From: Paraphysomonas bandaiensis
Taxonomy: Eukaryota > Protista > Chrysophyceae
DNA length: 64,000 bases
Direction: 5' to 3'
Assembly: GCA_965644295.1 (NCBI GenBank)
Contig: CBFFRP010000375.1
Location: 1 to 64,000 of the forward strand
Positions 1-54,335 of the stretch are shown piece by piece; position 1 is the stretch's first letter, and each line of letters opens with the position of its first letter. The notes under the pieces are model-generated. The model searched no databases. It saw nothing but the letters and a program-made list of their open reading frames with translations, and had not been told where the DNA came from. Position numbers and translations under genes: made by a program.

Positions 1-102
1 GCATTACGCACGACTATTGGATGTGTATTGCATGGTGGTTCTTATGAAAGTGAGTCGCGTGATTGTATAGATGTAGTGTTAATGCGATAGCATGATATAT
101 AT

Positions 103-182
103 AGTGTCGTTGATGTATACATATTTGCTACTCTTGAGTTACTCAATGACGACTCTCTAACTACCAAGATCACTGAGACACT
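103..182 (+). ncRNA. U24: Box C/D snoRNA U24 (SNORD24/snR24 family), copy 1
   Basis: Terminal stem AGTGTC(103-108)/GACACT(177-182); box C TGATGT (111-116, the U24-type variant); guide ATATTTGCTACT (121-132); D' TTGA (134-137); C' ATGACGA (146-152); guide CTACCAAGATC (161-171); box D CTGA (173-176). Both guides complement the conserved LSU rRNA segment GAUCUUGGUGGUAGUAGCAAAUAU targeted by human U24 and yeast snR24. Confidence 0.93.
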
Positions 183-402
183 TGATGATCATGCTTGATA
201 ATAGCCATCACTACATATAGTAATTTGTTTGTGTTTGACGGTATACTGTTACAGGGCTGTATATGGTGGTGGGCGATGATTGGTTTGAGTATGGCACTGG
301 GCATTACGCACGACTATTGGATGTGTATTGCATGGTGGTTCTTATGAAAGTGAGTCGCGTGATTGTATAGATGTAGTGTTAATGCGATAGCATGATATAT
401 AT

Positions 403-482
403 AGTGTCGTTGATGTATACATATTTGCTACTCTTGAGTTACTCAATGACGACTCTCTAACTACCAAGATCACTGAGACACT
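403..482 (+). ncRNA. U24: U24 snoRNA copy 2
   Basis: Identical to copy 1 (+300 nt). Confidence 0.92.
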
Positions 483-702
483 TGATGATCATGCTTGATA
501 ATAGCCATCACTACATATAGTAATTTGTTTGTGTTTGACGGTATACTGTTACAGGGCTGTATATGGTGGTGGGCGATGATTGGTTTGAGTATGGCACTGG
601 GCATTACGCACGACTATTGGATGTGTATTGCATGGTGGTTCTTATGAAAGTGAGTCGCGTGATTGTATAGATGTAGTGTTAATGCGATAGCATGATATAT
701 AT

Positions 703-782
703 AGTGTCGTTGATGTATACATATTTGCTACTCTTGAGTTACTCAATGACGACTCTCTAACTACCAAGATCACTGAGACACT
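703..782 (+). ncRNA. U24: U24 snoRNA copy 3
   Basis: Identical to copy 1. Confidence 0.92.
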
Positions 783-1002
783 TGATGATCATGCTTGATA
801 ATAGCCATCACTACATATAGTAATTTGTTTGTGTTTGACGGTATACTGTTACAGGGCTGTATATGGTGGTGGGCGATGATTGGTTTGAGTATGGCACTGG
901 GCATTACGCACGACTATTGGATGTGTATTGCATGGTGGTTCTTATGAAAGTGAGTCGCGTGATTGTATAGATGTAGTGTTAATGCGATAGCATGATATAT
1001 AT

Positions 1003-1082
1003 AGTGTCGTTGATGTATACATATTTGCTACTCTTGAGTTACTCAATGACGACTCTCTAACTACCAAGATCACTGAGACACT
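1003..1082 (+). ncRNA. U24: U24 snoRNA copy 4
   Basis: Identical to copy 1. Confidence 0.92.
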
Positions 1083-1302
1083 TGATGATCATGCTTGATA
1101 ATAGCCATCACTACATATAGTAATTTGTTTGTGTTTGACGGTATACTGTTACAGGGCTGTATATGGTGGTGGGCGATGATTGGTTTGAGTATGGCACTGG
1201 GCATTACGCACGACTATTGGATGTGTATTGCATGGTGGTTCTTATGAAAGTGAGTCGCGTGATTGTATAGATGTAGTGTTAATGCGATAGCATGATATAT
1301 AT

Positions 1303-1382
1303 AGTGTCGTTGATGTATACATATTTGCTACTCTTGAGTTACTCAATGACGACTCTCTAACTACCAAGATCACTGAGACACT
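1303..1382 (+). ncRNA. U24: U24 snoRNA copy 5
   Basis: Identical to copy 1. Confidence 0.92.
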
Positions 1383-1602
1383 TGATGATCATGCTTGATA
1401 ATAGCCATCACTACATATAGTAATTTGTTTGTGTTTGACGGTATACTGTTACAGGGCTGTATATGGTGGTGGGCGATGATTGGTTTGAGTATGGCACTGG
1501 GCATTACGCACGACTATTGGATGTGTATTGCATGGTGGTTCTTATGAAAGTGAGTCGCGTGATTGTATAGATGTAGTGTTAATGCGATAGCATGATATAT
1601 AT

Positions 1603-1682
1603 AGTGTCGTTGATGTATACATATTTGCTACTCTTGAGTTACTCAATGACGACTCTCTAACTACCAAGATCACTGAGACACT
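1603..1682 (+). ncRNA. U24: U24 snoRNA copy 6
   Basis: Identical to copy 1. Confidence 0.92.
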
Positions 1683-1902
1683 TGATGATCATGCTTGATA
1701 ATAGCCATCACTACATATAGTAATTTGTTTGTGTTTGACGGTATACTGTTACAGGGCTGTATATGGTGGTGGGCGATGATTGGTTTGAGTATGGCACTGG
1801 GCATTACGCACGACTATTGGATGTGTATTGCATGGTGGTTCTTATGAAAGTGAGTCGCGTGATTGTATAGATGTAGTGTTAATGCGATAGCATGATATAT
1901 AT

Positions 1903-1982
1903 AGTGTCGTTGATGTATACATATTTGCTACTCTTGAGTTACTCAATGACGACTCTCTAACTACCAAGATCACTGAGACACT
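1903..1982 (+). ncRNA. U24: U24 snoRNA copy 7
   Basis: Identical to copy 1. Confidence 0.92.
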
Positions 1983-2202
1983 TGATGATCATGCTTGATA
2001 ATAGCCATCACTACATATAGTAATTTGTTTGTGTTTGACGGTATACTGTTACAGGGCTGTATATGGTGGTGGGCGATGATTGGTTTGAGTATGGCACTGG
2101 GCATTACGCACGACTATTGGATGTGTATTGCATGGTGGTTCTTATGAAAGTGAGTCGCGTGATTGTATAGATGTAGTGTTAATGCGATAGCATGATATAT
2201 AT

Positions 2203-2282
2203 AGTGTCGTTGATGTATACATATTTGCTACTCTTGAGTTACTCAATGACGACTCTCTAACTACCAAGATCACTGAGACACT
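2203..2282 (+). ncRNA. U24: U24 snoRNA copy 8
   Basis: Identical to copy 1. Confidence 0.92.
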
Positions 2283-2502
2283 TGATGATCATGCTTGATA
2301 ATAGCCATCACTACATATAGTAATTTGTTTGTGTTTGACGGTATACTGTTACAGGGCTGTATATGGTGGTGGGCGATGATTGGTTTGAGTATGGCACTGG
2401 GCATTACGCACGACTATTGGATGTGTATTGCATGGTGGTTCTTATGAAAGTGAGTCGCGTGATTGTATAGATGTAGTGTTAATGCGATAGCATGATATAT
2501 AT

Positions 2503-2582
2503 AGTGTCGTTGATGTATACATATTTGCTACTCTTGAGTTACTCAATGACGACTCTCTAACTACCAAGATCACTGAGACACT
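2503..2582 (+). ncRNA. U24: U24 snoRNA copy 9
   Basis: Identical to copy 1. Confidence 0.92.
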
Positions 2583-2802
2583 TGATGATCATGCTTGATA
2601 ATAGCCATCACTACATATAGTAATTTGTTTGTGTTTGACGGTATACTGTTACAGGGCTGTATATGGTGGTGGGCGATGATTGGTTTGAGTATGGCACTGG
2701 GCATTACGCACGACTATTGGATGTGTATTGCATGGTGGTTCTTATGAAAGTGAGTCGCGTGATTGTATAGATGTAGTGTTAATGCGATAGCATGATATAT
2801 AT

Positions 2803-2882
2803 AGTGTCGTTGATGTATACATATTTGCTACTCTTGAGTTACTCAATGACGACTCTCTAACTACCAAGATCACTGAGACACT
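2803..2882 (+). ncRNA. U24: U24 snoRNA copy 10
   Basis: Identical to copy 1. Confidence 0.92.
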
Positions 2883-3102
2883 TGATGATCATGCTTGATA
2901 ATAGCCATCACTACATATAGTAATTTGTTTGTGTTTGACGGTATACTGTTACAGGGCTGTATATGGTGGTGGGCGATGATTGGTTTGAGTATGGCACTGG
3001 GCATTACGCACGACTATTGGATGTGTATTGCATGGTGGTTCTTATGAAAGTGAGTCGCGTGATTGTATAGATGTAGTGTTAATGCGATAGCATGATATAT
3101 AT

Positions 3103-3182
3103 AGTGTCGTTGATGTATACATATTTGCTACTCTTGAGTTACTCAATGACGACTCTCTAACTACCAAGATCACTGAGACACT
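3103..3182 (+). ncRNA. U24: U24 snoRNA copy 11
   Basis: Identical to copy 1. Confidence 0.92.
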
Positions 3183-3402
3183 TGATGATCATGCTTGATA
3201 ATAGCCATCACTACATATAGTAATTTGTTTGTGTTTGACGGTATACTGTTACAGGGCTGTATATGGTGGTGGGCGATGATTGGTTTGAGTATGGCACTGG
3301 GCATTACGCACGACTATTGGATGTGTATTGCATGGTGGTTCTTATGAAAGTGAGTCGCGTGATTGTATAGATGTAGTGTTAATGCGATAGCATGATATAT
3401 AT

Positions 3403-3482
3403 AGTGTCGTTGATGTATACATATTTGCTACTCTTGAGTTACTCAATGACGACTCTCTAACTACCAAGATCACTGAGACACT
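3403..3482 (+). ncRNA. U24: U24 snoRNA copy 12
   Basis: Identical to copy 1. Confidence 0.92.
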
Positions 3483-3702
3483 TGATGATCATGCTTGATA
3501 ATAGCCATCACTACATATAGTAATTTGTTTGTGTTTGACGGTATACTGTTACAGGGCTGTATATGGTGGTGGGCGATGATTGGTTTGAGTATGGCACTGG
3601 GCATTACGCACGACTATTGGATGTGTATTGCATGGTGGTTCTTATGAAAGTGAGTCGCGTGATTGTATAGATGTAGTGTTAATGCGATAGCATGATATAT
3701 AT

Positions 3703-3782
3703 AGTGTCGTTGATGTATACATATTTGCTACTCTTGAGTTACTCAATGACGACTCTCTAACTACCAAGATCACTGAGACACT
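3703..3782 (+). ncRNA. U24: U24 snoRNA copy 13
   Basis: Identical to copy 1. Confidence 0.92.
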
Positions 3783-4002
3783 TGATGATCATGCTTGATA
3801 ATAGCCATCACTACATATAGTAATTTGTTTGTGTTTGACGGTATACTGTTACAGGGCTGTATATGGTGGTGGGCGATGATTGGTTTGAGTATGGCACTGG
3901 GCATTACGCACGACTATTGGATGTGTATTGCATGGTGGTTCTTATGAAAGTGAGTCGCGTGATTGTATAGATGTAGTGTTAATGCGATAGCATGATATAT
4001 AT

Positions 4003-4082
4003 AGTGTCGTTGATGTATACATATTTGCTACTCTTGAGTTACTCAATGACGACTCTCTAACTACCAAGATCACTGAGACACT
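4003..4082 (+). ncRNA. U24: U24 snoRNA copy 14
   Basis: Identical to copy 1. Confidence 0.92.
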
Positions 4083-4302
4083 TGATGATCATGCTTGATA
4101 ATAGCCATCACTACATATAGTAATTTGTTTGTGTTTGACGGTATACTGTTACAGGGCTGTATATGGTGGTGGGCGATGATTGGTTTGAGTATGGCACTGG
4201 GCATTACGCACGACTATTGGATGTGTATTGCATGGTGGTTCTTATGAAAGTGAGTCGCGTGATTGTATAGATGTAGTGTTAATGCGATAGCATGATATAT
4301 AT

Positions 4303-4382
4303 AGTGTCGTTGATGTATACATATTTGCTACTCTTGAGTTACTCAATGACGACTCTCTAACTACCAAGATCACTGAGACACT
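4303..4382 (+). ncRNA. U24: U24 snoRNA copy 15
   Basis: Identical to copy 1. Confidence 0.92.
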
Positions 4383-4602
4383 TGATGATCATGCTTGATA
4401 ATAGCCATCACTACATATAGTAATTTGTTTGTGTTTGACGGTATACTGTTACAGGGCTGTATATGGTGGTGGGCGATGATTGGTTTGAGTATGGCACTGG
4501 GCATTACGCACGACTATTGGATGTGTATTGCATGGTGGTTCTTATGAAAGTGAGTCGCGTGATTGTATAGATGTAGTGTTAATGCGATAGCATGATATAT
4601 AT

Positions 4603-4682
4603 AGTGTCGTTGATGTATACATATTTGCTACTCTTGAGTTACTCAATGACGACTCTCTAACTACCAAGATCACTGAGACACT
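4603..4682 (+). ncRNA. U24: U24 snoRNA copy 16
   Basis: Identical to copy 1. Confidence 0.92.
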
Positions 4683-4902
4683 TGATGATCATGCTTGATA
4701 ATAGCCATCACTACATATAGTAATTTGTTTGTGTTTGACGGTATACTGTTACAGGGCTGTATATGGTGGTGGGCGATGATTGGTTTGAGTATGGCACTGG
4801 GCATTACGCACGACTATTGGATGTGTATTGCATGGTGGTTCTTATGAAAGTGAGTCGCGTGATTGTATAGATGTAGTGTTAATGCGATAGCATGATATAT
4901 AT

Positions 4903-4982
4903 AGTGTCGTTGATGTATACATATTTGCTACTCTTGAGTTACTCAATGACGACTCTCTAACTACCAAGATCACTGAGACACT
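4903..4982 (+). ncRNA. U24: U24 snoRNA copy 17
   Basis: Identical to copy 1. Confidence 0.92.
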
Positions 4983-5202
4983 TGATGATCATGCTTGATA
5001 ATAGCCATCACTACATATAGTAATTTGTTTGTGTTTGACGGTATACTGTTACAGGGCTGTATATGGTGGTGGGCGATGATTGGTTTGAGTATGGCACTGG
5101 GCATTACGCACGACTATTGGATGTGTATTGCATGGTGGTTCTTATGAAAGTGAGTCGCGTGATTGTATAGATGTAGTGTTAATGCGATAGCATGATATAT
5201 AT

Positions 5203-5282
5203 AGTGTCGTTGATGTATACATATTTGCTACTCTTGAGTTACTCAATGACGACTCTCTAACTACCAAGATCACTGAGACACT
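5203..5282 (+). ncRNA. U24: U24 snoRNA copy 18
   Basis: Identical to copy 1. Confidence 0.92.
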
Positions 5283-5502
5283 TGATGATCATGCTTGATA
5301 ATAGCCATCACTACATATAGTAATTTGTTTGTGTTTGACGGTATACTGTTACAGGGCTGTATATGGTGGTGGGCGATGATTGGTTTGAGTATGGCACTGG
5401 GCATTACGCACGACTATTGGATGTGTATTGCATGGTGGTTCTTATGAAAGTGAGTCGCGTGATTGTATAGATGTAGTGTTAATGCGATAGCATGATATAT
5501 AT

Positions 5503-5582
5503 AGTGTCGTTGATGTATACATATTTGCTACTCTTGAGTTACTCAATGACGACTCTCTAACTACCAAGATCACTGAGACACT
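5503..5582 (+). ncRNA. U24: U24 snoRNA copy 19
   Basis: Identical to copy 1. Confidence 0.92.
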
Positions 5583-5802
5583 TGATGATCATGCTTGATA
5601 ATAGCCATCACTACATATAGTAATTTGTTTGTGTTTGACGGTATACTGTTACAGGGCTGTATATGGTGGTGGGCGATGATTGGTTTGAGTATGGCACTGG
5701 GCATTACGCACGACTATTGGATGTGTATTGCATGGTGGTTCTTATGAAAGTGAGTCGCGTGATTGTATAGATGTAGTGTTAATGCGATAGCATGATATAT
5801 AT

Positions 5803-5882
5803 AGTGTCGTTGATGTATACATATTTGCTACTCTTGAGTTACTCAATGACGACTCTCTAACTACCAAGATCACTGAGACACT
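5803..5882 (+). ncRNA. U24: U24 snoRNA copy 20
   Basis: Identical to copy 1. Confidence 0.92.
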
Positions 5883-6102
5883 TGATGATCATGCTTGATA
5901 ATAGCCATCACTACATATAGTAATTTGTTTGTGTTTGACGGTATACTGTTACAGGGCTGTATATGGTGGTGGGCGATGATTGGTTTGAGTATGGCACTGG
6001 GCATTACGCACGACTATTGGATGTGTATTGCATGGTGGTTCTTATGAAAGTGAGTCGCGTGATTGTATAGATGTAGTGTTAATGCGATAGCATGATATAT
6101 AT

Positions 6103-6182
6103 AGTGTCGTTGATGTATACATATTTGCTACTCTTGAGTTACTCAATGACGACTCTCTAACTACCAAGATCACTGAGACACT
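6103..6182 (+). ncRNA. U24: U24 snoRNA copy 21
   Basis: Identical to copy 1. Confidence 0.92.
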
Positions 6183-6402
6183 TGATGATCATGCTTGATA
6201 ATAGCCATCACTACATATAGTAATTTGTTTGTGTTTGACGGTATACTGTTACAGGGCTGTATATGGTGGTGGGCGATGATTGGTTTGAGTATGGCACTGG
6301 GCATTACGCACGACTATTGGATGTGTATTGCATGGTGGTTCTTATGAAAGTGAGTCGCGTGATTGTATAGATGTAGTGTTAATGCGATAGCATGATATAT
6401 AT

Positions 6403-6482
6403 AGTGTCGTTGATGTATACATATTTGCTACTCTTGAGTTACTCAATGACGACTCTCTAACTACCAAGATCACTGAGACACT
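6403..6482 (+). ncRNA. U24: U24 snoRNA copy 22
   Basis: Identical to copy 1. Confidence 0.92.
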
Positions 6483-6702
6483 TGATGATCATGCTTGATA
6501 ATAGCCATCACTACATATAGTAATTTGTTTGTGTTTGACGGTATACTGTTACAGGGCTGTATATGGTGGTGGGCGATGATTGGTTTGAGTATGGCACTGG
6601 GCATTACGCACGACTATTGGATGTGTATTGCATGGTGGTTCTTATGAAAGTGAGTCGCGTGATTGTATAGATGTAGTGTTAATGCGATAGCATGATATAT
6701 AT

Positions 6703-6782
6703 AGTGTCGTTGATGTATACATATTTGCTACTCTTGAGTTACTCAATGACGACTCTCTAACTACCAAGATCACTGAGACACT
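6703..6782 (+). ncRNA. U24: U24 snoRNA copy 23
   Basis: Identical to copy 1. Confidence 0.92.
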
Positions 6783-7002
6783 TGATGATCATGCTTGATA
6801 ATAGCCATCACTACATATAGTAATTTGTTTGTGTTTGACGGTATACTGTTACAGGGCTGTATATGGTGGTGGGCGATGATTGGTTTGAGTATGGCACTGG
6901 GCATTACGCACGACTATTGGATGTGTATTGCATGGTGGTTCTTATGAAAGTGAGTCGCGTGATTGTATAGATGTAGTGTTAATGCGATAGCATGATATAT
7001 AT

Positions 7003-7082
7003 AGTGTCGTTGATGTATACATATTTGCTACTCTTGAGTTACTCAATGACGACTCTCTAACTACCAAGATCACTGAGACACT
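7003..7082 (+). ncRNA. U24: U24 snoRNA copy 24
   Basis: Identical to copy 1. Confidence 0.92.
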
Positions 7083-7302
7083 TGATGATCATGCTTGATA
7101 ATAGCCATCACTACATATAGTAATTTGTTTGTGTTTGACGGTATACTGTTACAGGGCTGTATATGGTGGTGGGCGATGATTGGTTTGAGTATGGCACTGG
7201 GCATTACGCACGACTATTGGATGTGTATTGCATGGTGGTTCTTATGAAAGTGAGTCGCGTGATTGTATAGATGTAGTGTTAATGCGATAGCATGATATAT
7301 AT

Positions 7303-7382
7303 AGTGTCGTTGATGTATACATATTTGCTACTCTTGAGTTACTCAATGACGACTCTCTAACTACCAAGATCACTGAGACACT
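7303..7382 (+). ncRNA. U24: U24 snoRNA copy 25
   Basis: Identical to copy 1. Confidence 0.92.
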
Positions 7383-7602
7383 TGATGATCATGCTTGATA
7401 ATAGCCATCACTACATATAGTAATTTGTTTGTGTTTGACGGTATACTGTTACAGGGCTGTATATGGTGGTGGGCGATGATTGGTTTGAGTATGGCACTGG
7501 GCATTACGCACGACTATTGGATGTGTATTGCATGGTGGTTCTTATGAAAGTGAGTCGCGTGATTGTATAGATGTAGTGTTAATGCGATAGCATGATATAT
7601 AT

Positions 7603-7682
7603 AGTGTCGTTGATGTATACATATTTGCTACTCTTGAGTTACTCAATGACGACTCTCTAACTACCAAGATCACTGAGACACT
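7603..7682 (+). ncRNA. U24: U24 snoRNA copy 26
   Basis: Identical to copy 1. Confidence 0.92.
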
Positions 7683-7902
7683 TGATGATCATGCTTGATA
7701 ATAGCCATCACTACATATAGTAATTTGTTTGTGTTTGACGGTATACTGTTACAGGGCTGTATATGGTGGTGGGCGATGATTGGTTTGAGTATGGCACTGG
7801 GCATTACGCACGACTATTGGATGTGTATTGCATGGTGGTTCTTATGAAAGTGAGTCGCGTGATTGTATAGATGTAGTGTTAATGCGATAGCATGATATAT
7901 AT

Positions 7903-7982
7903 AGTGTCGTTGATGTATACATATTTGCTACTCTTGAGTTACTCAATGACGACTCTCTAACTACCAAGATCACTGAGACACT
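7903..7982 (+). ncRNA. U24: U24 snoRNA copy 27
   Basis: Identical to copy 1. Confidence 0.92.
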
Positions 7983-8202
7983 TGATGATCATGCTTGATA
8001 ATAGCCATCACTACATATAGTAATTTGTTTGTGTTTGACGGTATACTGTTACAGGGCTGTATATGGTGGTGGGCGATGATTGGTTTGAGTATGGCACTGG
8101 GCATTACGCACGACTATTGGATGTGTATTGCATGGTGGTTCTTATGAAAGTGAGTCGCGTGATTGTATAGATGTAGTGTTAATGCGATAGCATGATATAT
8201 AT

Positions 8203-8282
8203 AGTGTCGTTGATGTATACATATTTGCTACTCTTGAGTTACTCAATGACGACTCTCTAACTACCAAGATCACTGAGACACT
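8203..8282 (+). ncRNA. U24: U24 snoRNA copy 28
   Basis: Identical to copy 1. Confidence 0.92.
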
Positions 8283-8502
8283 TGATGATCATGCTTGATA
8301 ATAGCCATCACTACATATAGTAATTTGTTTGTGTTTGACGGTATACTGTTACAGGGCTGTATATGGTGGTGGGCGATGATTGGTTTGAGTATGGCACTGG
8401 GCATTACGCACGACTATTGGATGTGTATTGCATGGTGGTTCTTATGAAAGTGAGTCGCGTGATTGTATAGATGTAGTGTTAATGCGATAGCATGATATAT
8501 AT

Positions 8503-8582
8503 AGTGTCGTTGATGTATACATATTTGCTACTCTTGAGTTACTCAATGACGACTCTCTAACTACCAAGATCACTGAGACACT
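8503..8582 (+). ncRNA. U24: U24 snoRNA copy 29 (last)
   Basis: Identical to copy 1; the downstream flank starts to diverge at 8654. Confidence 0.92.
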
Positions 8583-8988
8583 TGATGATCATGCTTGATA
8601 ATAGCCATCACTACATATAGTAATTTGTTTGTGTTTGACGGTATACTGTTACACGGCTGTATATGGTGATGGGCGATGATTGGTTTGAGAATGGCACTGG
8701 GCATTACGCACGACTATTGGATGTGTATTGCATGGTGATTCTTATGATAGGTAGACGTATTTGTCTTCTTTTGAAAGAAGAATTTTTTTTGTACTTTAAC
8801 TTTGAACGGTGGTGTGTTTCTCTTTAATTGTGTGATTTTAAGGAAGATTTTTACAATATTTGGTTTTAGAATTAAATCGAATAAATAAAAATAAGTTAGT
8901 TGTTGTCGCTAAGTACAAACGTATTATTGTGTTCAATATGCAGTCATCCAGCGTGCAAGCGAATGCCTATAGCGATGTCTTTCAAAAC

Positions 8989-10346: not shown

Positions 10347-11894
10347 ATGGAAGCAGAACCAATAAACCCCTCTACCCCTTCTACAGTACGATGTGTTCAT
10401 CCTGGCAAAGAAGACCCTCGTCGATTCAATATTTTAGTAGTTGGAGAAAGCGGCATAGGTAACCCTCTTATCTCTAATGAACCCCTCTAACCCACCCCTT
10501 CAACCCTTCCATCAGGCAAAACAACCTTCCTTAATACTGTATTCAAAGCATATACAGAGAAAGATTGTAGTGTGGTACGTACAGACCGGACAGATGATAT
10601 AGTTGAAGTGGGACGTTTCTATGTGAAATCGGATGGAAATGCCTCTGATTTTGATGTAACGCTCTTTGATAGTCCTGGTTATGGTGATTTAGTGGACAAT
10701 CAGGTTAGTGAGAGGGGTATACAGTATATAATGAAGTGTATTATGGTTTTATGTATGCAGGTGTATATTGATACACTGTGTAATTTTGTTTCGGAGAGAC
10801 ATAGTCGATGGCTAGCACTTGAGAATGATCTGAGCGAAGCTGAACGACTTATTCGAGATGACCGAGTGCATTGTGTAATCCACTTCATCGCACCTCATCG
10901 ATTGAAGCGACTTGACATATCATGCATGCGTCAGCTTCATTGTCTTGCTCCTACGGTACCTGTGGTGGCCAAGGCAGATAGCATGACCCCCGATGAGCGT
11001 CGTAAGTTTCTAGAATATGCACACGAAAAGTTGAACGAATTTTCTATTTCTTCGCCGTTTGGTCTCTGTAATTTGGCCGGAGAGAACTCTGATAGTGGGA
11101 AAGATAGTGCAGGTAGTGAGTCGATAGCTTGTGATGATGAAATTGAAGACGAAGTCATATATCCGTCCTTACCAGCCGGAAGTCCACTGACGTCCTCTGA
11201 TGAGAGTCCATGGATCCCACCCATCAAGACGTCAACAACTTCCTCAATTAATGTACCAACAGCAAATGAAAAAAGAAGTAATGCTACCCTCAGCAACGTG
11301 GAATCATCCCATCAAAGTGATATGCCTGTCCCTGGAGGTAATCATTCCCCAGAATCCTCGAAATTTACTGATGGCCAGGTTACGCTTTTCTGTGTTGTGA
11401 GTGATCCTTCCTTTCATCGTGTTTATCCGTGGGGCACCTGCGAAGTAGAAAATGAAGAGCACTCAGACTTGATGCAACTACAGAGGATACTTTTTGAAGG
11501 TAACCTGTCACTTGTGTGGAACTGACAAGAAATATGTTTTGAGAATTCTATCTGGTTCTCATGTGAGTGAGCAGGTGGGTACATGAGACGCCTTGTACGC
11601 ATTACCGACAAAATGACTCTATCTCTCCGCAACCCCAATACACCAGTTTTGTCCAATTTGCTATCTTTTTATCGTTACTTGTGTTCACCTTCCAAATCTA
11701 TTAGACTGAAGTGTGATGACGACGTATCCGCTGTCTGGATTTTTATTCTTATAGGCTTGATGTGTATCTGCTTTGGGCTGATAGCTTTACAGACATCCAG
11801 AGACTCTGTGTCTACTGAACAAGGAGCCATTCTGCGCGCAATGCTTCATAATGAATTAAGTCTTGGTATGGGACGAGGGTTTTGCCATGAGTAG
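10347..11894 (+). CDS. Septin GTPase with predicted C-terminal transmembrane helix (multi-exon)
   Basis: FNILVVGESGI-G-KTT P-loop split by intron 10459-10515; G3 DSPGYGD; DDRVHCVIHFIAPHRL; G4 AKAD; RVYPWGTCEVENEEHSD septin-unique element; last exon encodes AVWIFILIGLMCICFGLIAL. Confidence 0.9.
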
Positions 11895-12595
11895 GGACTT
11901 TTTTCTTGTTTATTATCGAGACATTTTTTTATTCTCGTATTTGTATCATTGTTTACTATGTTTATTCTTTTTAGCTCTTCTGTCGTGTTTGATTTGAGTT
12001 CGCTGGTGTTTCTAACTGCAGCTTGATTTTTTTGTATCACTTTATTTGATGAGACCTATCGAAAATGTTTACTAAGATTGAATTACTGTTTTTTAATTAA
12101 TTGTCGCCAATTATATATATAATATGATATTATGTATACGTATATACACGGTCAACATATTTGAGGCAAGATCATCGAATCCTCAGCATAGCAAGTGATA
12201 CAGGTGTCAATTCTCTCGGTACTGATTATTAAGCTCGTCTAGATCATTACCGTTTTGTTGAATTTCTAGATCCGTAGTTCGATTTTATAATCCAACCCAG
12301 CTACTCTTGTTGGTGGATAGCTGCTATGGCAATTATTTCGATCAGGATATCAAACGACAATACGCTGCGTAGATAAGAAGTATAATATGCACCAAATCAA
12401 ATATATATATGCCCATCAAACTTAAGATTATATTTCAATACATTGAAAAATTCGGAATACAACAATTTATTACATCACGGTGACATACTTTCAATACTGC
12501 TATGTACCACTCTAATATATAAATTTGAACAACCACAAGTACTCTAAAAAAAGAGACTAAACTTCTATGTTCACAAAAAATAGCAAAGAGCTGTT

Positions 12596-22742: not shown

Positions 22743-23085
22743 ATATAGTGTTACTAAGTTGCTACTAAGTGTGAATAGAAGTAAGTGTTACTAAGTAAGT
22801 GTCGAAAGGTTATGTAAGTAAAAGTTACGTTGTATCGAATATAATATAGTGTTACTAAGTTGCTACTAAGTGTGAATAGAAGTAAGTGTTACTAAGTAAG
22901 TGTCGAAAGGTTATGTAAGTAAAAGTTACGTTGTATCGAATGTTAGTTATGTAAGTAAAAGTTACGTTGTATCGAATATAATATAGTGTTACTAAGTTGC
23001 TACTAAGTGTGAATAGAAGTAAGTGTTACTAAGTAAGTGTCGAAAGGTTATGTAAGTAAAAGTTACGTTGTATCGAATGTTAGTT
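22743..23085. repeat. ~101-bp tandem repeat, 3 copies with an internal ~36-bp partial duplication
   Basis: Units starting ATATAGTGTTACTAAGTTGC at 22743, 22844 and 22981. Confidence 0.9.
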
Positions 23086-23966
23086 AATGGTAAAAATGAA
23101 ACAAACTAAGACTAAGGAACAGATAGCAAAAAATATTACTAAATAAGTAGAAACAAACGATGCAGGAAGCAGTGTTAAGTCAGCCGACGGAAATGAATTG
23201 GTTTCAGTGAGCTGGTCATGATACCGTGATGTCTCCGTTCGGCTGTTCGAGCTGCCACATGCTGCTGCTCGTTTAAAGTATCCATTCCCTTGCGGCGAAT
23301 ATTAGTAACGAATCATTTCATCCAGTGTATCTGGACAAGTAAGAGCATGCAATGTCTGATAGAAGGGATCAGGACTGCGGTCTTCCATGATCGAACACTC
23401 TGCAGGATCGTCAGGCAAGGGAGTAAAATCTTCCTCAAGCTCCAGAGCGCAAGTAAAACTCCAGGATTGTCAGGCAAGGGAGTTTTACTTGCGCTCTGGA
23501 GTATATTCTGGATACGAGTGTATGTATGGGAGTTCTATGAGCTCTACTGGGATGCCCTTCGCGCTAACGAGAACAAAAGCGTCGTTTTTCATCGTCTTGT
23601 CATGGAGCATGCCAATAAAGAAGTGTCACTCCAGGCAACACTCACTGTGAGGACACGAATCTTAGTCGTGATGATAACTCTGACTTGATTGCAGTGAAGT
23701 TGTGATTGTGTAGTAATCGCAAATGCTATGCGGCTGACTAAAGTGTGACGTCGAACAGAACATTGAAGTATGGGCAGGCACTGGTATATGAACAGCGTTT
23801 TGGAACTCCAAGAAGCAGATAGGGATGGTTTGAGGGAACAAGATACCATCATCCAGCTGAAATCTTGATGTCGTGCTGCAGAAACCGCAACTTCAATTAG
23901 ATAGTAGCGAATGCCACGCACTTAGATAGTGATTTCTTGGAATTCCAATAAGGCAACAATTCTGTG

Positions 23967-30050: not shown

Positions 30051-30124
30051 TGCTCAATCGGGGGCTCGAACCCAGGACCTTAGGTTTATTAGACCTACGC
30101 TCTGACCAACTGAGCTAATCGAGC
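30051..30124 (-). tRNA. tRNA-Ile(AAT)
   Basis: Cloverleaf GCTCGAT..GCTC AGTTGGTCA GAGC..TAGGT CT AAT AA ACCTA..GGTTCGAGCCC..ATTGAGC A, followed by a T-run terminator. Confidence 0.95.
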
Positions 30125-34122: not shown

Positions 34123-34196
34123 GCTCGATTAGCTCAGTTGGTCAGAGCGTAGGTCTAATAAACCTAAGGTCCTGGGTTCGAGCCCCCGATTGAGCA
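34123..34196 (+). tRNA. tRNA-Ile(AAT), second identical copy
   Basis: Identical to 30051-30124 in the opposite orientation; downstream TTTTTTT Pol III terminator. Confidence 0.95.
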
Positions 34197-47020: not shown

Positions 47021-47313
47021 TGTTGAGATCTGAAGATTCTATATACTTGCAATTGAGTGCAGTATTATGTGAGATGCAAGGATCGAAAGATATATATGTA
47101 ATTAGTACATTATATTATGTAGTATGAAACTGAAGTAGAAGTGGATGACTATACAGGATACGATCACTGAGTGGGTGGTTTGTACACTATAGTAGTAAAT
47201 GAATGGTGTTGAACACATCGAACACAACTTAGGTTCTTTATCATGTAATGTTTATAATTTCATCTTATCAGTTGAGAATAGTAAACCTTAGCAAATAATG
47301 TCAACTTCTGTTA
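47021..47313 (+). repeat. Copia 5' LTR
   Basis: TGTTGAGA...CTTCTGTTA, identical to 52020-52312. Confidence 0.95.
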
Positions 47314-50300
47314 TGGTAGCGAGTGATAGTTGTAGGGATGGGGAAGATGACAAGAAGCTACGGTTTGACAAGAACCAAGCAGACTATTCAGCGAGAAAAA
47401 TCAAGATGCATCTAATGAAGAAAAACCGAAACCATCTTGGCTTGGAGGACCCGCCAGCCGGAGGAAGGAATTTAGAGTCATGGAGAGAGCGTAATGATAC
47501 CTGTGTTAGTACTATTTGGGAGGCTTGCGAGCATGACCCTGATGTGTTGGAGGTAGCCAATCAATATTTGGAGGGGAAGGCAATTTTACCTGCTGATGAT
47601 CCTGCTAAGGAGGTGTTATCCAGTGAGCTCCTTCAGACACTGGTTGATAGGTTCAGAGGCGAGATTGGGACTGTATTGGAGAAGACTACGGCAGAATACC
47701 ATTCGTTCAAAATAAGGCCGGGGGAAAAGGTGTCTGTTGGGGTAGATCGACTGAACGGTATAATCCAGAAGCTCATAAAATTGGGACAACCGCAGACAGA
47801 GGCAAGTAAATTAGCAAAGATAAAAGCAGCGCTGCAGATAGAGGAATTACATGATTTATGGATGTCGGTAGCGATGATGCCTAAAGCAACAACTACATTT
47901 GATTCGGTGAAAGAGGCTTGTGAAGAGTATGACGAGGCTATGACGCAGCTGAAGAAACTAAAGGGAGACAAATCTGAAGAGATCAATTTTACGGCGTCGA
48001 AGGAGCCAGTGGTTTGTTCATTTTGTCGGAAGAAGGGACATGTAGCAGCGAATTGTTATGCTAAGGAACGACAAAGAAAAATGGATAAGTTCAAAAGAAA
48101 AGGGAAGACAAAGGAAAAGGCTTCGAAGAGTGTGCAGCAGCCAGGTTCAAAGGATTATACTGGTTGTCATATCTGTGGAGATTTTAGTCATAAAGCCCGA
48201 CAGTGCAAGTCGAAAAAACGGAAGAACATAAAAAACCCGGATAATGAGAATCCTCGAAAATCGAACAGGAAATTCGAGACAGAATGGAAGAAATACGTCA
48301 ACGACGGAGAGTCGTCGGATGATGAAGCGAATATGTTTGGAGAAGAGGTTTTGCTATCGGTGGATACGTCGGAAGAACCTCGTGTATATCTGGACAGTTG
48401 TGCAAGTAAAAGACTGTTTATAGTAAAGGATAAAATTGCACTGGAGTCATTTACTCCTGAGTTTGGGGCAATCCAACTAACTAGAAAGGGTTCTCAATTG
48501 GAGACACAGGGGGCTGGTACATTCGGGGAATGGAGAGACATCAGAGTTAGTGAAGAAGCGGTGAAGAACATTGTGTCAGGAGGGATGCTGAGATCAATGG
48601 GATACGGATTACAACTGCTTCGAAAGCCTAAAATCGTGGAATTGGACTCTGGAAACGAGGTGTTGACTGGAGAGTACGATGAGCATGGAGGGATGCCGTA
48701 TGTGGACTTGATGGAGGTGTTAAATCTGCCAAATGTGTCTATGTGCAATCAGATGGAGGAGGTAAATTTGTCGGATAATACAGGACAAGATGCGTTGGAT
48801 CGCTTACATGAGCGTACTGGACATGTCTCGAAATCGAAGTTATTAGAAGCTCACCGACACATGTTATTCAGAGGATCAGGACTACAACGACATCACCTTT
48901 CGAAGGCAAAGGAGAAGAGTTGCAAGAAACCCCTGTGTAAATGGTGTGCCAAGGCGAAGATAACCAGGCATTCGTTCAAATCACGGGACAACGAAGAGCT
49001 AAGCGCAGTCAGGTTTCTGGAACGAGTGACAGCGGACATCTCAGTCTACCTGAATTGTGAATCCAGACAAGGGTATAAGTACGTGCTCCTATTCACGGAC
49101 TTAGCAACAAAGATGATATGGGAATATGGATTGAGGACTCGAAGCGGAGAGGAGGTGTTCAAATGTCTACGACACTTGTGCGAGGTCCACTTAGTGAAGT
49201 ACGAGGGGTGGAACCGTATAGTGGAGTATCATGCCGATGGAGGATCCGAACTTATTAGTCAGCAGATAAGAGAGTATCTGTTGCAGCGATATGGGACTCG
49301 GGTGTCACATACAACACGAGACACGCCAGAGCTCAACGCGGTGTCTGAGAGGAAATTCCGAACAATTGGGGAGATGACACTGACGATGTTGACGGCATCT
49401 GGACTTCCAAAGTCGTTCTGGTTTGATGCTTATCAAACTGCATGTTACATTGTGCGACGAATGCCAACTCGGACGTGGCAAGGATGGATGTCTCCATATG
49501 AGTGTGTCCCAGGGGGAGCGTTCCCAGCCTATCGTGGCTACGGAAATGGGGGTGCAAAGCATATGTGCTAACACCCAAGGCCGACAGGAGGAAGGACTGG
49601 GAGGACAAAGCAATGACAGGTTATTTCATAGGGTATCCAGCTGATCGAAAAGGATACAAGGTGCTAGTGGGGGACACCGTAGTACACTCTGTACATGTAT
49701 TATTTGATGAATCGGTACCTGAGAGGTCTCAGGATTATTATAGAGAGCTGGAGGAGGCTCAAGTGGCTATAGATCCCGAGGCTCGTCAACCGGGTGAGTT
49801 TGAGTATCTTATCGGAAAGCACCATGAGGATGGTGGTCTGCTATACAAGACTAACAGAGTGGTGATAAGGAAGGGACTTATTGTGGGATACCGGTCGTTG
49901 GTTACTGGTAACCAGGTTCAAGTGGAGGATAAAACTCCTATTCATATTGCTGACATCAAGAAGATGACAGAGGATCTTGCGCAGAGGGTGGTTAGGGCCA
50001 GAGTTACTGACAACCGTGACGGCGGTATCAGCGGAGTGGTGCCACAGCAGTCGGAAAGTGGGCAGGTGCAGCCCCAGGCTGACTCAGCATTACCTTCGGG
50101 GGAAGGGACCCCTGCCGAGAATCATCCGCACGGCAAACGCGCAAGAACTCCAAGGACGGTAACGAATGTGTCGGTGTTAGGACAAATCCATCATTTGAGT
50201 GATGAGAGTGATGTGAGTGACCTTTTACAGGAGGCAGACTCAGTGTGGATGTCAGCGGAAGAGTCGACAGTGCCTCAGACACATCGTGAGTCCTTGGAGA

Positions 50301-51894
50301 GTGCCGAGCACAGGGAGTGGAGACGAGCTCGCCGTGTAGAGCGAGAGGGTTTGGCGAAGCGAGATACCATGGAGGTGACTCGTATACCGGACGGAGTCGT
50401 CCCACTGCACTCCAAGTACGTCTATGGAAAGAAGTACGATAAGGAGGGAGAGGTCCGCCGATATAAGGCTCGTCTTGTAGCAATCGGTTGTGGACAGCAG
50501 TCGAGTGGTTGGGCGAACCATTTCGCACCCGTTGTTAAGGGGGTAACAGTGCGACTGTTAATCGCCATAGCTTTCGTGATGAACATGGTAATTCATCAAC
50601 TGGATGTGTCTAACGCATTTCTATATGCAGATATAGAGGGGGATGTATATATGAAGGCAACTCCGGACTTTCAGCTGCCTGAGGGGTACTGCTTTAAGTT
50701 GAAGAAGTCGTTATACGGGCTTCGGAGTTCCCCGCGGTCGTGGTGGAAAACATTGGATAAATTCATACGATCTATGCATTTTAAACCATGTGTATTAGAC
50801 CCGTGTTTGTATTATCAGTATAAGGGCGATGAATTGATATTATTAACGATATATGTGGATGATATCCTAGTGTTAGGTCGTGATGTCAACATAGTGAAGG
50901 ATATTAAAGCTCAACTGTGTGCCCGGTTTGATATGAAGGATATGGGCGAGATGGAACATTTTCTGAATGTTCGAGTCACAAGAACGCCAGAGTATATTCG
51001 TCTTGACCAATCAGTATATGCGGCTAAGATCTTAGAAAAGTTTGAAAAGTATCTTGGGTCACCGCGAAAGGTACGGAAGAGTCCTCTACCGGCGGAAGCA
51101 ATGGATTTAGTGGCAAAAGGGGCACGGCATGAGCATACCGAGGAGGAACAGCTTATAGTAGATAACTTCCCATATCGGCCGCTGATAGGTGCATTACTAT
51201 ATCTATCGATGAACACGAGGCCGGATATTGCCTATGCAGTGGGAGTACTGTCTCGGTTCAGTAATAAGGTGAATATTGAAGTATGCAAGCTATTAACACA
51301 TGTATGGCAATATATTCGTGGTTCTATTGACAAAGGGATTCAATATGGGAGTAGACGGTTCGACTTCCATATGTTTACTGACGCGGATTGGGCGGGAGAT
51401 CAGCTCTCCAGGAAGTCCACGTCGGGGTACGTTGGGTTTGCAGCGGGAGGGCCTATAGTCTGGCAGTCCAAACTGCAGACGACAGTGGCAACGTCAAGCA
51501 TGCAGTCTGAGTATCAGTGTATTTACTCGGGTCTCCAAGAAGTGCTATGGGTTCGGGGGTGACGGGTGAGATTAAGTTGAGGCTCATCAAACCCACACCA
51601 TTCTTCATCGACAGTCAGAGTGCCCAGGATTTGGCCGAAAACCCAGTGTTTCACAAGAAGTCGAAGCACATTGAGATTAAGTATCACATGGTGAGAGAGC
51701 ACGTGGATCCCAATCAGTTCAATACGATTAAGTTAGTGCATGTGCATACATCGCAACAAGCAGCAGATATTTATACAAAGTCATTGGTTGGTTTATCATA
51801 TATGGAGCAGAGAAAGAGAAATCTTGGAGAGAAAGTTAAGAGTTCCACTGAAGTGATTAATGAGGGACCAAGGGATAAAAGAAGGCGCAAGTAG
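47298..51894 (+). CDS. Copia gag-pol polyprotein (two apparent frameshifts in G runs)
   Basis: Two CCHC knuckles (CSFCRKKGHVAANC, CHICGDFSHKARQC); PR LDSCAS; integrase HHCC and DDE; RT QLDVSNAFL, KKSLYGL, YVDD; RNase H FTDADWAG...KSKHIEIKYH. Confidence 0.9.
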
Positions 51895-52312: not shown

Positions 52313-54335
52313 GCAAATACTGGAGAGCAGCACACAGGAAAGGAATGCTTATTAATGATGATAATGATAAGATAATAGTAGATGTAGTTTTGTTTGATTC
52401 CGGTTCGAGTAATGATAATTTTATTTCTAAGGCATATATGGATGAGGTGGGAGATAAGTTGAAGAAATTTGTTGTGGAAAGACCAATACGAGTCAGAGTA
52501 GCTAATGGGAAAGATGTGCATATACAAGGTTATATTCCTGTTATGGTGCAGTTTAAGGATTAGGAAAAGACTTACAGTGCAAAATTGAATCTATACATAC
52601 TGGATGGACTAACTAAGGAAATTATAATAGGCTTGCCGGCGATATGTGAACATTTTTCAGAGTTGTTTTGCAAGATGGTTCGGTCGACTAGTAGTGTAGA
52701 AACAACTACTACTATAATGTATTTGGATTTACCTACTGGTGGAGGGTGTGAAGTGAACTATGCTATAGAGGATTTTGAAACGAAATATGATCAAATCACT
52801 AGAGCTACAACACGTGAACCATGGGATAATCCAGTTCCAGTAATAGCTCCAGAGGATGAGATGATGCCTGAACCTTGTTCTTTTGGTGGTCTTGTAAACT
52901 TCATGGAGATGTCAGTTGAGGAAGCACAGGAGGAGTATCTGAATAATTTGGAACAAAAAAGTTAATCCTGAGTTTGCAAAACAGACGAAGTTTTAGAATT
53001 GTTAAAAACATTGGGCATACAAGTGTTTGTACCTAGGGAGTGGACTGGTATTAGAATGACTCCACTTAAACTCAAATGCAAGTCAACGATACCAGATCGC
53101 ATTAAGCCCATGCGAAGGGTTCCTCCGAAATTGTACGATAGGACCAAGCAGGAGTTTGAAAGAATGTTAAAATATTTCTACAAGAAGAGTATGAGTCCAT
53201 ATGCGTCGCCTATTGTAGTTGCACCAAAGGCAACAAAACCATTTATAAGAATTTGTGGTGACTATCATATTGTCAATCTACAGATGGAGAGCCCACACTA
53301 TCCTATTCCAGATGTTTCAAAGAGTTACATAAGGCAGCCGGTTTCAAAGTTTTTGTTGATCTTGATATATGTAATGCATTTCATGGTATACCTTTGGATG
53401 ACAGTACATCAGCGTTATTATCAGTGCAAACCCCGTGGGGGCAATTCGAACCGAAGTTCCTGCCGGCTAGTGGAGTGCTAATGATGGTGATGTCTGAAAT
53501 ATTCAGTGATTATACCGAATGGATGATTGTCATATTTGACAATATGCTGATATTAGCGAACGATTATGATGATGCCTACACTAAGTTGGAATTGGTCCTA
53601 TTACGTTGCAAAGAATATAATGTCGTGTTGAAGTTATCTAAGAGTAAGTTCGGATATTCTTCAGTGGAGTTCTTTGGATATTTGTGTTAGGATAATACTT
53701 ATGCGCTGACGCAAGAACGAAAGGATTCGGTCAATTCAATTACTTTTCCGGAAGGTTCGAACAAAACTAAACAAATGCAACGGTTCTTAGGAGCAGCAGT
53801 GTATTTCAAACCGTTTATAATGAACTACAGCCAACTAACTCATAGACTCATTGACATGACCAAAAAAGACTTTGATTGGACAGAAGCGAGTTGGAATGTT
53901 GACTACAGGAAGGAGTTTGAATTCTATATGTCCGGATTATAATTTACGATGGCTTTTGATGACTGATGCTTCAGACTATGCCTGTGGTGGAGTATTGATT
54001 CAAATTGCAATCTCAGGTGAGGGTGTTGAGTTGTTTCAAGTCAACCAATTCAATGAAATGGTCCATTATTGATAAGGAGTGTTTTGGAGCGTTCTATAGC
54101 ATGTATAAACTGTCATATTATGTTCGGGGTAAACACTTAAACAATGTGCTCATGGATCATGCCAATCTGAGACGTATTGGCATCCTTTGTATATTTTTGT
54201 TCAAAGATGCCTCTAATATTGAGATAACAATTATATGTATTCCAGCTCTAGTTGTACTTCAGGAATATAGAGAAATTTTGCTACAATTTATTTCCGAAAA
54301 ATAAGATGCTAAGGCTTTTTTGAGGTAGATTTTCC

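Follow-up and report, generated by a model that had tools for sequence, protein, structure and literature searches.

The first 8747 positions of the window, by which we mean the whole stretch of Paraphysomonas bandaiensis DNA that was analysed (64,000 nucleotides (nt), contig CBFFRP010000375.1, positions 1 to 64,000 of the forward strand, hereafter C375), are taken up by a head-to-tail tandem array on the + strand, every unit of which carries U24, also called SNORD24, a small nucleolar RNA (snoRNA) of the box C/D type. Tandem Repeats Finder describes the array as having a period of 300, 29.2 copies, 99% matches and no indels. When the units are compared one by one the first 28 are 100% identical, unit 29 (8401-8700) differs from them at 3 positions, and a partial unit of 49 nt closes the array at 8749/8750, with unique sequence following from 8750. 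The array starts at base 1 of C375, the window being C375:1-64000, and because it runs off the start of the contig the 29 copies are a lower bound.

A scan with cmscan against Rfam matched the SNORD24 family (RF00069) 29 times on the + strand, each match reaching 53.2 bits, where the gathering score is 41, and covering the whole model (1-76 of 76), with an E-value of 1.8e-6 over the whole window and of 1.8e-8 over a 620-nt stretch. In the first unit the terminal stem is formed by AGTGTC (103-108) and GACACT (177-182), and U24 with this 6-bp stem would span 103-182. Box C is TGATGT (111-116) and box D is CTGA (173-176), the internal boxes are a degenerate D' box TTGA (134-137) and a C' box ATGACGA (146-152), and the D' and D guides lie at 121-132 and 161-171. 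Box C, box D and both antisense blocks agree with the SNORD24 consensus when aligned to it. An earlier first-pass annotation of this DNA, made from the sequence letters, had described this layout of stem, boxes and guides, had named the element U24/SNORD24 and had put the array at 29 copies or more. It proved right on all three counts, with every motif found at its place in unit 1, the family recognised over its full model well above the gathering score, and 29 matches, the last of them in a unit whose snoRNA is identical to the others although the unit as a whole is not. The single-sequence folding z-score of U24 is 0.08, which is uninformative, as is expected for box C/D RNAs. A second snoRNA was also looked for in the remaining 224 bp of each unit, where Rfam gave nothing better than E = 1 except matches that overlap U24.

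The guides of U24 are expected to pair with the large subunit (LSU) ribosomal RNA (rRNA) at GAUCUUGGU(G/A)GUAGUAGCAAAUAU, with methylation at the C and A sites and perhaps at the G site. By the +5 rule the D guide is predicted to direct methylation to the C of GAUC, the equivalent of yeast C1437, and the D' guide to the A of GUAGC, the equivalent of yeast A1449, with G1450 as a further possible site. This assignment of targets to U24, including G1450 as in yeast and Arabidopsis, follows published work (PMC8053127; see also PMC4848094).

The snoRNA is not the only feature of the unit. Each 300-bp repeat can be divided into a GT-AG intron that carries U24 and a short exon, the positions of which are given in Table 1 along with those of related arrays elsewhere in the assembly. 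The splice sites are canonical and none of the 28 identical units has lost either of them, and each of the six frames of the joined exons is interrupted by stop codons, as counted by a script. U24 is separated from the 5' splice site by 55 nt and from the 3' splice site by 74 nt. In vertebrates there is reportedly a range of spacings between snoRNA and 3' splice site that favours splicing-dependent assembly of the small nucleolar ribonucleoprotein (snoRNP), a finding attributed to Hirose and Steitz in 2001, and the 74 nt seen here falls within that range. The lost 3' splice site of the last unit, where AG has become AC, is typical array-edge decay.

Table 1. Features of the U24 array in the window and of related units on other contigs of the assembly (positions without a contig name are those of the window).
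Feature	Position	Strand	Evidence or remark
U24/SNORD24 box C/D snoRNA, copy 1	105..180	+	RF00069, 53.2 bits; copies 2-29 at +300k, k = 1..28 (105+300k to 180+300k)
U24, copy 29 (last)	8505..8580	+	snoRNA sequence identical to other copies
Host-gene intron, 205 nt, GT-AG (unit 1; every 300 bp)	50..254	+	5' splice site AAA|GTGAGT, 3' splice site TTACAG|G
Non-coding exon, 95 nt (unit 1/2; every 300 bp)	255..349	+	sequence and RNA-like depth
Last exon copy with intact downstream 5' splice site	8355..8449	+	RNA-like contigs
Last intron	8450..8654	+	3' splice site AC, not AG (C at 8654); other copies and reads have G
Degenerate last exon copy, array edge	8655..8749	+	unit comparison; RNA-like depth
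Eleven 322-bp units with SNORD45-like box C/D RNA	C188 (L011 2041-5960)	-	unit alignment
Solo copy of the unit, 80-83% identity	C463:87405-87936 (L022 5406-5937)	-	alignment
U14-like snoRNA array, 57 matches, period about 255	C434:87990-102345 (L154 part)	-	36-50 bits, below Rfam cut-off of 64

Whether these exons are in fact joined can be judged from public sequencing runs. The read evidence consists of Logan contigs of runs from several studies, in which each contig has a single depth figure that is inflated by the repeat, and the word depths are rough and, by the tool's own warning, are not copy numbers. Two of the runs, X9 and X10, are RNA-like, a status that is supported by zero intergenic depth at 8731-8824 and by contigs that are limited to genes. 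In X9 the exon bins have depths of 2895-3227, the intron 20.3 and the messenger RNA (mRNA) of the neighbouring gene 12, and in X10 the corresponding figures are 10801-12071, 44.3 and 37.9. The exon is therefore 140-270 times deeper than the intron in the RNA-like runs, compared with 3.4-5.5 times in X5, a DNA-like run, and when the ratio in DNA (3.4-5.5) is corrected for, the intron is still depleted roughly 26- to 80-fold in RNA. The high depth of the exon is in part due to the many exon copies in each transcript, and so is by itself no proof of a very high transcript level. Contigs of both X9 and X10 that align as far as 8450 go on with GCTGTATATG, the first letters of the next exon, and since this overhang is the predicted AAA|GGCTG splice joint, the exons are joined in RNA at the level of contigs. 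One contig that bears the joint has a depth of 1653, against 20 for a contig that passes unspliced from exon into intron, other RNA-like contigs end at 8449, and from 8731 to about 8860 the depth in the RNA-like runs is zero. The first-pass annotation had likened the locus to the homogenised gene arrays of ribosomal DNA (rDNA) or 5S, a likeness that has to be given up, as the RNA-like contigs point to units that each consist of a spliced intron with U24 and a 95-nt non-coding exon.

It might still be supposed that U24 is transcribed from independent genes in the style of 5S or the U-snRNAs (small nuclear RNAs), with a promoter and terminator in each unit and no splicing. Conservation extends for roughly 85 bp upstream of the snoRNA and for some 75 bp downstream of it in the U24 array, in the SNORD45-like array on contig C188 and in a relic on contig C463 (both described below), and a TATA-like run is found just 5' of the terminal stem, all of which would suit a gene with its own signals. 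However, the conserved flanks coincide exactly with the exon and the splice sites, and the TATA-like run stops 2-3 nt short of the stem, so near to it that it could not position a start of transcription upstream of the mature 5' end. The RNA-like contigs contain the spliced joint, have the exon at a depth far above that of the intron, and include unspliced precursors that extend from the exon into the intron. Transcription of each unit on its own is for these reasons thought to be very unlikely.

The explanation that we prefer, to which we give a probability of about 0.8, is that a long non-coding host gene for snoRNAs, built of tandem repeats, has its 3' part at window 1-8747; this gene would be read from the + strand, would be spliced and would be the sole source of U24. 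RNA polymerase II would transcribe through the repeats, and the spliceosome would remove the 205-nt intron of each 300-bp unit and join the 95-nt exons, this being the step that is seen in the contigs. The snoRNP proteins would attach to the C/D kink-turn of the pre-RNA or of the lariat, as in the standard intronic pathway, and each excised intron would yield one U24 after debranching and exonuclease trimming to the terminal stem, giving an RNA of about 76-80 nt that would guide fibrillarin.

A number of points weigh against this explanation. The RNA status of X9 and X10 is the tool's guess, and the exon-exon joint rests on overhangs of 10 letters with no joint listed as such. No terminal exon can be seen where the RNA depth ends, near 8730. 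The 100% identity of the copies carries no signal of purifying selection and may partly be owed to polishing of the assembly. The mature U24 and its methylations are predictions. Finally, no contig of the assembly reaches past about nt 465 of the organism's own LSU, the five contigs found by a search with the 5' end of the LSU all stopping within that length; two patterns for the U24 target that allowed 2-3 mismatches likewise found nothing above control in the assembly.

As the array lies at the end of a contig and its units are perfectly identical, it could also be thought that the assembler has inflated one or two real copies. Read depth argues strongly for the opposite. In run X5, which is judged to be DNA-like from a 17.7-kb contig that crosses intergenic DNA, the U24-specific core has a depth of 11106 against 110 for the single-copy flank, a ratio of about 100. 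In X1, a further DNA-like run that is probably the source of the assembly, the core reaches about 84000-87000, a rough figure summed over contigs, against 35.7 for the flank, a ratio of over 1000. The unit is thus contained in independent public runs of several studies, at a depth about 100 times that of the flank or far more, and the concern that there might be only 1-2 copies is answered. A second contig, C188, has the same module in 12 copies that show small differences from one another, and inflation by the assembler is in our view extremely unlikely to account for the array. At least 30 copies of U24 are assembled, 29 on C375 and 1 on C188, and the true figure is probably about a hundred or more. 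Unequal crossing-over or gene conversion may be what keeps the array uniform.

The depth of the exon relative to the core is not the same in the two DNA-like runs. In X5 the depth of the exon is 3.4-5.5 times that of the U24 core, which suggests that other types of unit carry that exon there, whereas in X1 exon and core are about equal. The organisms from which X1 and X5 derive are near-identical, with 2 differences in about 850 nt of flank, yet their arrays seem to be very unlike in both size and make-up.

Another type of unit is present in the assembly. When the unit was compared with the whole assembly, a second locus came to light on C188, where the order on the minus strand is an AT-rich region that is divergent from a protein-coding gene, a decayed remnant of the intron, one U24 unit, whose snoRNA also matches SNORD24 at 53.2 bits over the whole model, and then eleven units of 322 bp. 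What the U24 and the 322-bp units have in common is precisely the exon together with 25 nt at the start of the intron and 47 nt at its end, which are 97-100% identical, and only the core that bears the snoRNA differs between them. All 12 copies of the exon on C188 keep both splice sites, while some bases shortly upstream of the 3' splice site vary. The second core is a box C/D RNA of 68 nt with the terminal stem GGGCUU/AAGCCC and the boxes AUGAUGU, CUGA, UGAUGU and a variant D box AUGA, and is a weak match to SNORD45 (RF00279; 25.4 bits, cut-off 42). Its D' guide pairs over 11 of 11 positions, with no G-U pair, with the organism's own small subunit (SSU) rRNA at 164-174, for which the +5 position is U167. 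For its second guide no match of at least 9 bp was found in the SSU, the 5.8S or the 5' end of the LSU. That one frame of exon and intron surrounds two different guides indicates that the module is a splicing cassette into which different guides can be fitted, and it gives a hint of the way in which new guides may spread in arrays of this kind. C188 and C375 may be two parts of a single gene, C188 its promoter-proximal end and C375 its 3' end.

One end of C188 has a feature of its own, in that a truncated SSU gene is joined directly to the last of the SNORD45-like introns. Outward-reading rDNA is found at the ends of five contigs, namely C188 (L011 1-2040), C438 (L033), C68 (L035), C420 (L036) and C653 (L034). 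In four of the five the first unit is truncated, to varying extents, with the SSU beginning at about model position 760, 477 or 1172, or with no SSU. The rDNA at these contig ends may represent blocks at several chromosome ends or loci, or may be the product of chimeric assembly.

Beyond the two arrays there seems to be no further gene for U24. A pattern made of both guides and box D is found at 30 places in the 62.5-Mb assembly, the 29 on C375 and the 1 on C188, and as all of these lie in array units, the array copies are the only intact U24 genes that are seen. Judged from the assembled sequence, the array appears to be the only source of U24 in the organism. The one candidate outside it is the solo copy of the unit on C463, in which an insertion of about 290 bp, with CTAACTA (7 letters) on both sides, interrupts U24, the first guide and the 3' stem carry mutations, and GC stands at the 5' splice site. 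Being split and mutated, and having no match to SNORD24 even at E <= 1, it was rejected as a working U24; the copy may be a relic of a single-copy state.

The reason for so large a number of copies is a separate matter. The array could be a selfish or neutral satellite that has arisen from a module of intron, snoRNA and exon, in which case splicing would be incidental, copy number would drift and there would be no role in dosage. The copies are identical, so that selection cannot be read from them, the size and make-up of the array seem to vary between sources (about 100 times the flank in X5, over 1000 times in X1), and the genome has many such arrays, all of which would be in keeping with a satellite. 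On the other hand, no copy other than the unit at the edge has lost a box, a guide or a splice site, and as there is no other intact U24 in the assembly, at least some of the array copies must be the functional genes for a guide that yeast, plants and humans have all conserved. We regard a satellite of this kind as unlikely, although it departs from the host-gene explanation only on the reason for the copy number and not on the nature of the copies. Dosage and neutral or selfish amplification are inseparable here, because identical copies carry no signal of selection and because size and make-up seem to differ. The first-pass annotation had proposed that a conserved guide for rRNA methylation has been amplified, and this is borne out by the SNORD24 matches, the depth ratios and the pattern of U24 across the genome. 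Its suggestion of a satellite born from a snoRNA is, by contrast, improbable, since no intact U24 gene is found in the assembly outside the array copies.

The host gene of U24 most closely recalls the arrays of SNORD116 and SNORD115 in mammals, and the SNORD113/114 arrays of the DLK1-DIO3 locus are similar to the SNORD116 type. SNORD116 and SNORD115 are arrayed among repeated non-coding exons of IPW-A/SNHG14 at the Prader-Willi locus (PMC4742849, PMC4063771). In both systems there are tandem units of a short non-coding exon and an intron with one box C/D snoRNA, dozens of copies, two kinds of snoRNA in blocks with the same frame, and local duplication. Whilst the mammalian snoRNAs are orphans without rRNA targets that are imprinted, enriched in the brain and diverged between copies, those described here are universal housekeeping guides in identical copies, probably in far higher number, in a unicellular marine protist. 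The U24 array works like the SNORD116/SNHG14 type but is not its homologue.

With canonical U24 the likeness is of another sort, being one of the snoRNA and not of the gene. The RNA belongs to the same family (RF00069), has the same two antisense elements, is placed in an intron and is predicted to act on the equivalents of yeast C1437 and A1449/G1450, but canonical U24 is present in one or two copies, in a protein-coding host or a small mixed cluster, and here it is found in a repetitive non-coding host. Human SNORD24 lies in an intron of RPL7A. In yeast snR24 lies in the intron of ASC1 (PMC4848094), and in Arabidopsis U24.1 and U24.2 are found in small clusters (PMC8053127). A scan of metagenomes with the U24 pattern gave, among the matches listed, 77 of 80 contigs with one copy and three with 2-3, and none like this array, although this is a weak baseline because metagenome assemblies collapse repeats. 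The three contigs with 2-3 U24 genes come from unrelated environmental eukaryotes (L048 847-1235, L095 1983-2684 and L087 2231-3631); L087 also bears a snoRNA of the snoR1 type, and all three clusters are of the ordinary polycistronic style.

Many tandem copies of housekeeping snoRNAs are also found in other protists, Euglena and the trypanosomatids having tandem clusters of modification guides. To our knowledge the arrays of these organisms are polycistronic or independently transcribed, and we know of none built from cis-spliced modules of intron and exon. In Euglena it is U3 that is known to be multi-copy (PMC2784804). A search of the literature, the coverage of which left many subscription papers outside, found no account of tandem snoRNA arrays in stramenopiles or of those of this genome.

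Within the same assembly the U14-like array on C434 is a further case, with another snoRNA and another unit. Its unit shows the motifs CAA|GTATGC and TTGCAG|G, although an exon-intron reading is uncertain because no more than about 30 nt would separate the end of the snoRNA from the AG; compared with this array, the U24 locus adds the shared cassette and the joint in RNA-like contigs. The first-pass annotation had noted that large arrays mostly consist of orphan snoRNAs, which holds for mammals but not for this organism, in which tandem arrays of housekeeping snoRNAs appear to be a habit, with 57 copies in the U14-like array.

If the locus has been read correctly, the repeated design of exon, intron and snoRNA, which is known mainly from imprinted orphan snoRNAs of mammals, has arisen independently for ordinary rRNA guides in a eukaryote that is unicellular. 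This also has a practical side, as repeat maskers hide the locus even though it is apparently the only set of U24 genes, and annotation would therefore wrongly list a universally conserved guide as missing. The array offers a simple system in which to study how such arrays originate, how their uniformity is kept up, and whether copy number serves as snoRNA dose or merely drifts. A wider proposal can be put forward tentatively, although we would sooner bet against it than for it, namely that housekeeping guides are here produced from giant, repetitive host genes of fast turnover, with hundreds to thousands of identical modules, which are their sole source, share a cassette and vary sharply between near-identical strains in size and make-up. 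The abundant repeat RNA made of 95-nt exons might, in addition, have a role of its own. Were this proposal to be true, it would be a gene organisation not described before for canonical guides and would provide an independent and tractable counterpart to the Prader-Willi type of array.

Several other features of the window are of minor note. Two identical transfer RNA (tRNA) genes with the anticodon AAU (63.8 bits) lie at 30051-30124 (-) and 34123-34196 (+), inverted with respect to each other and about 4 kb apart. A retrotransposon-like open reading frame is found at 47298-51562 (+) and 53520-53558, with an integrase core (Pfam rve) just under the cut-off. An AT-rich stretch at 22743-23086 contains perfect direct repeats of 101 and 137 bp, each in 2.0 copies of 100% identity.

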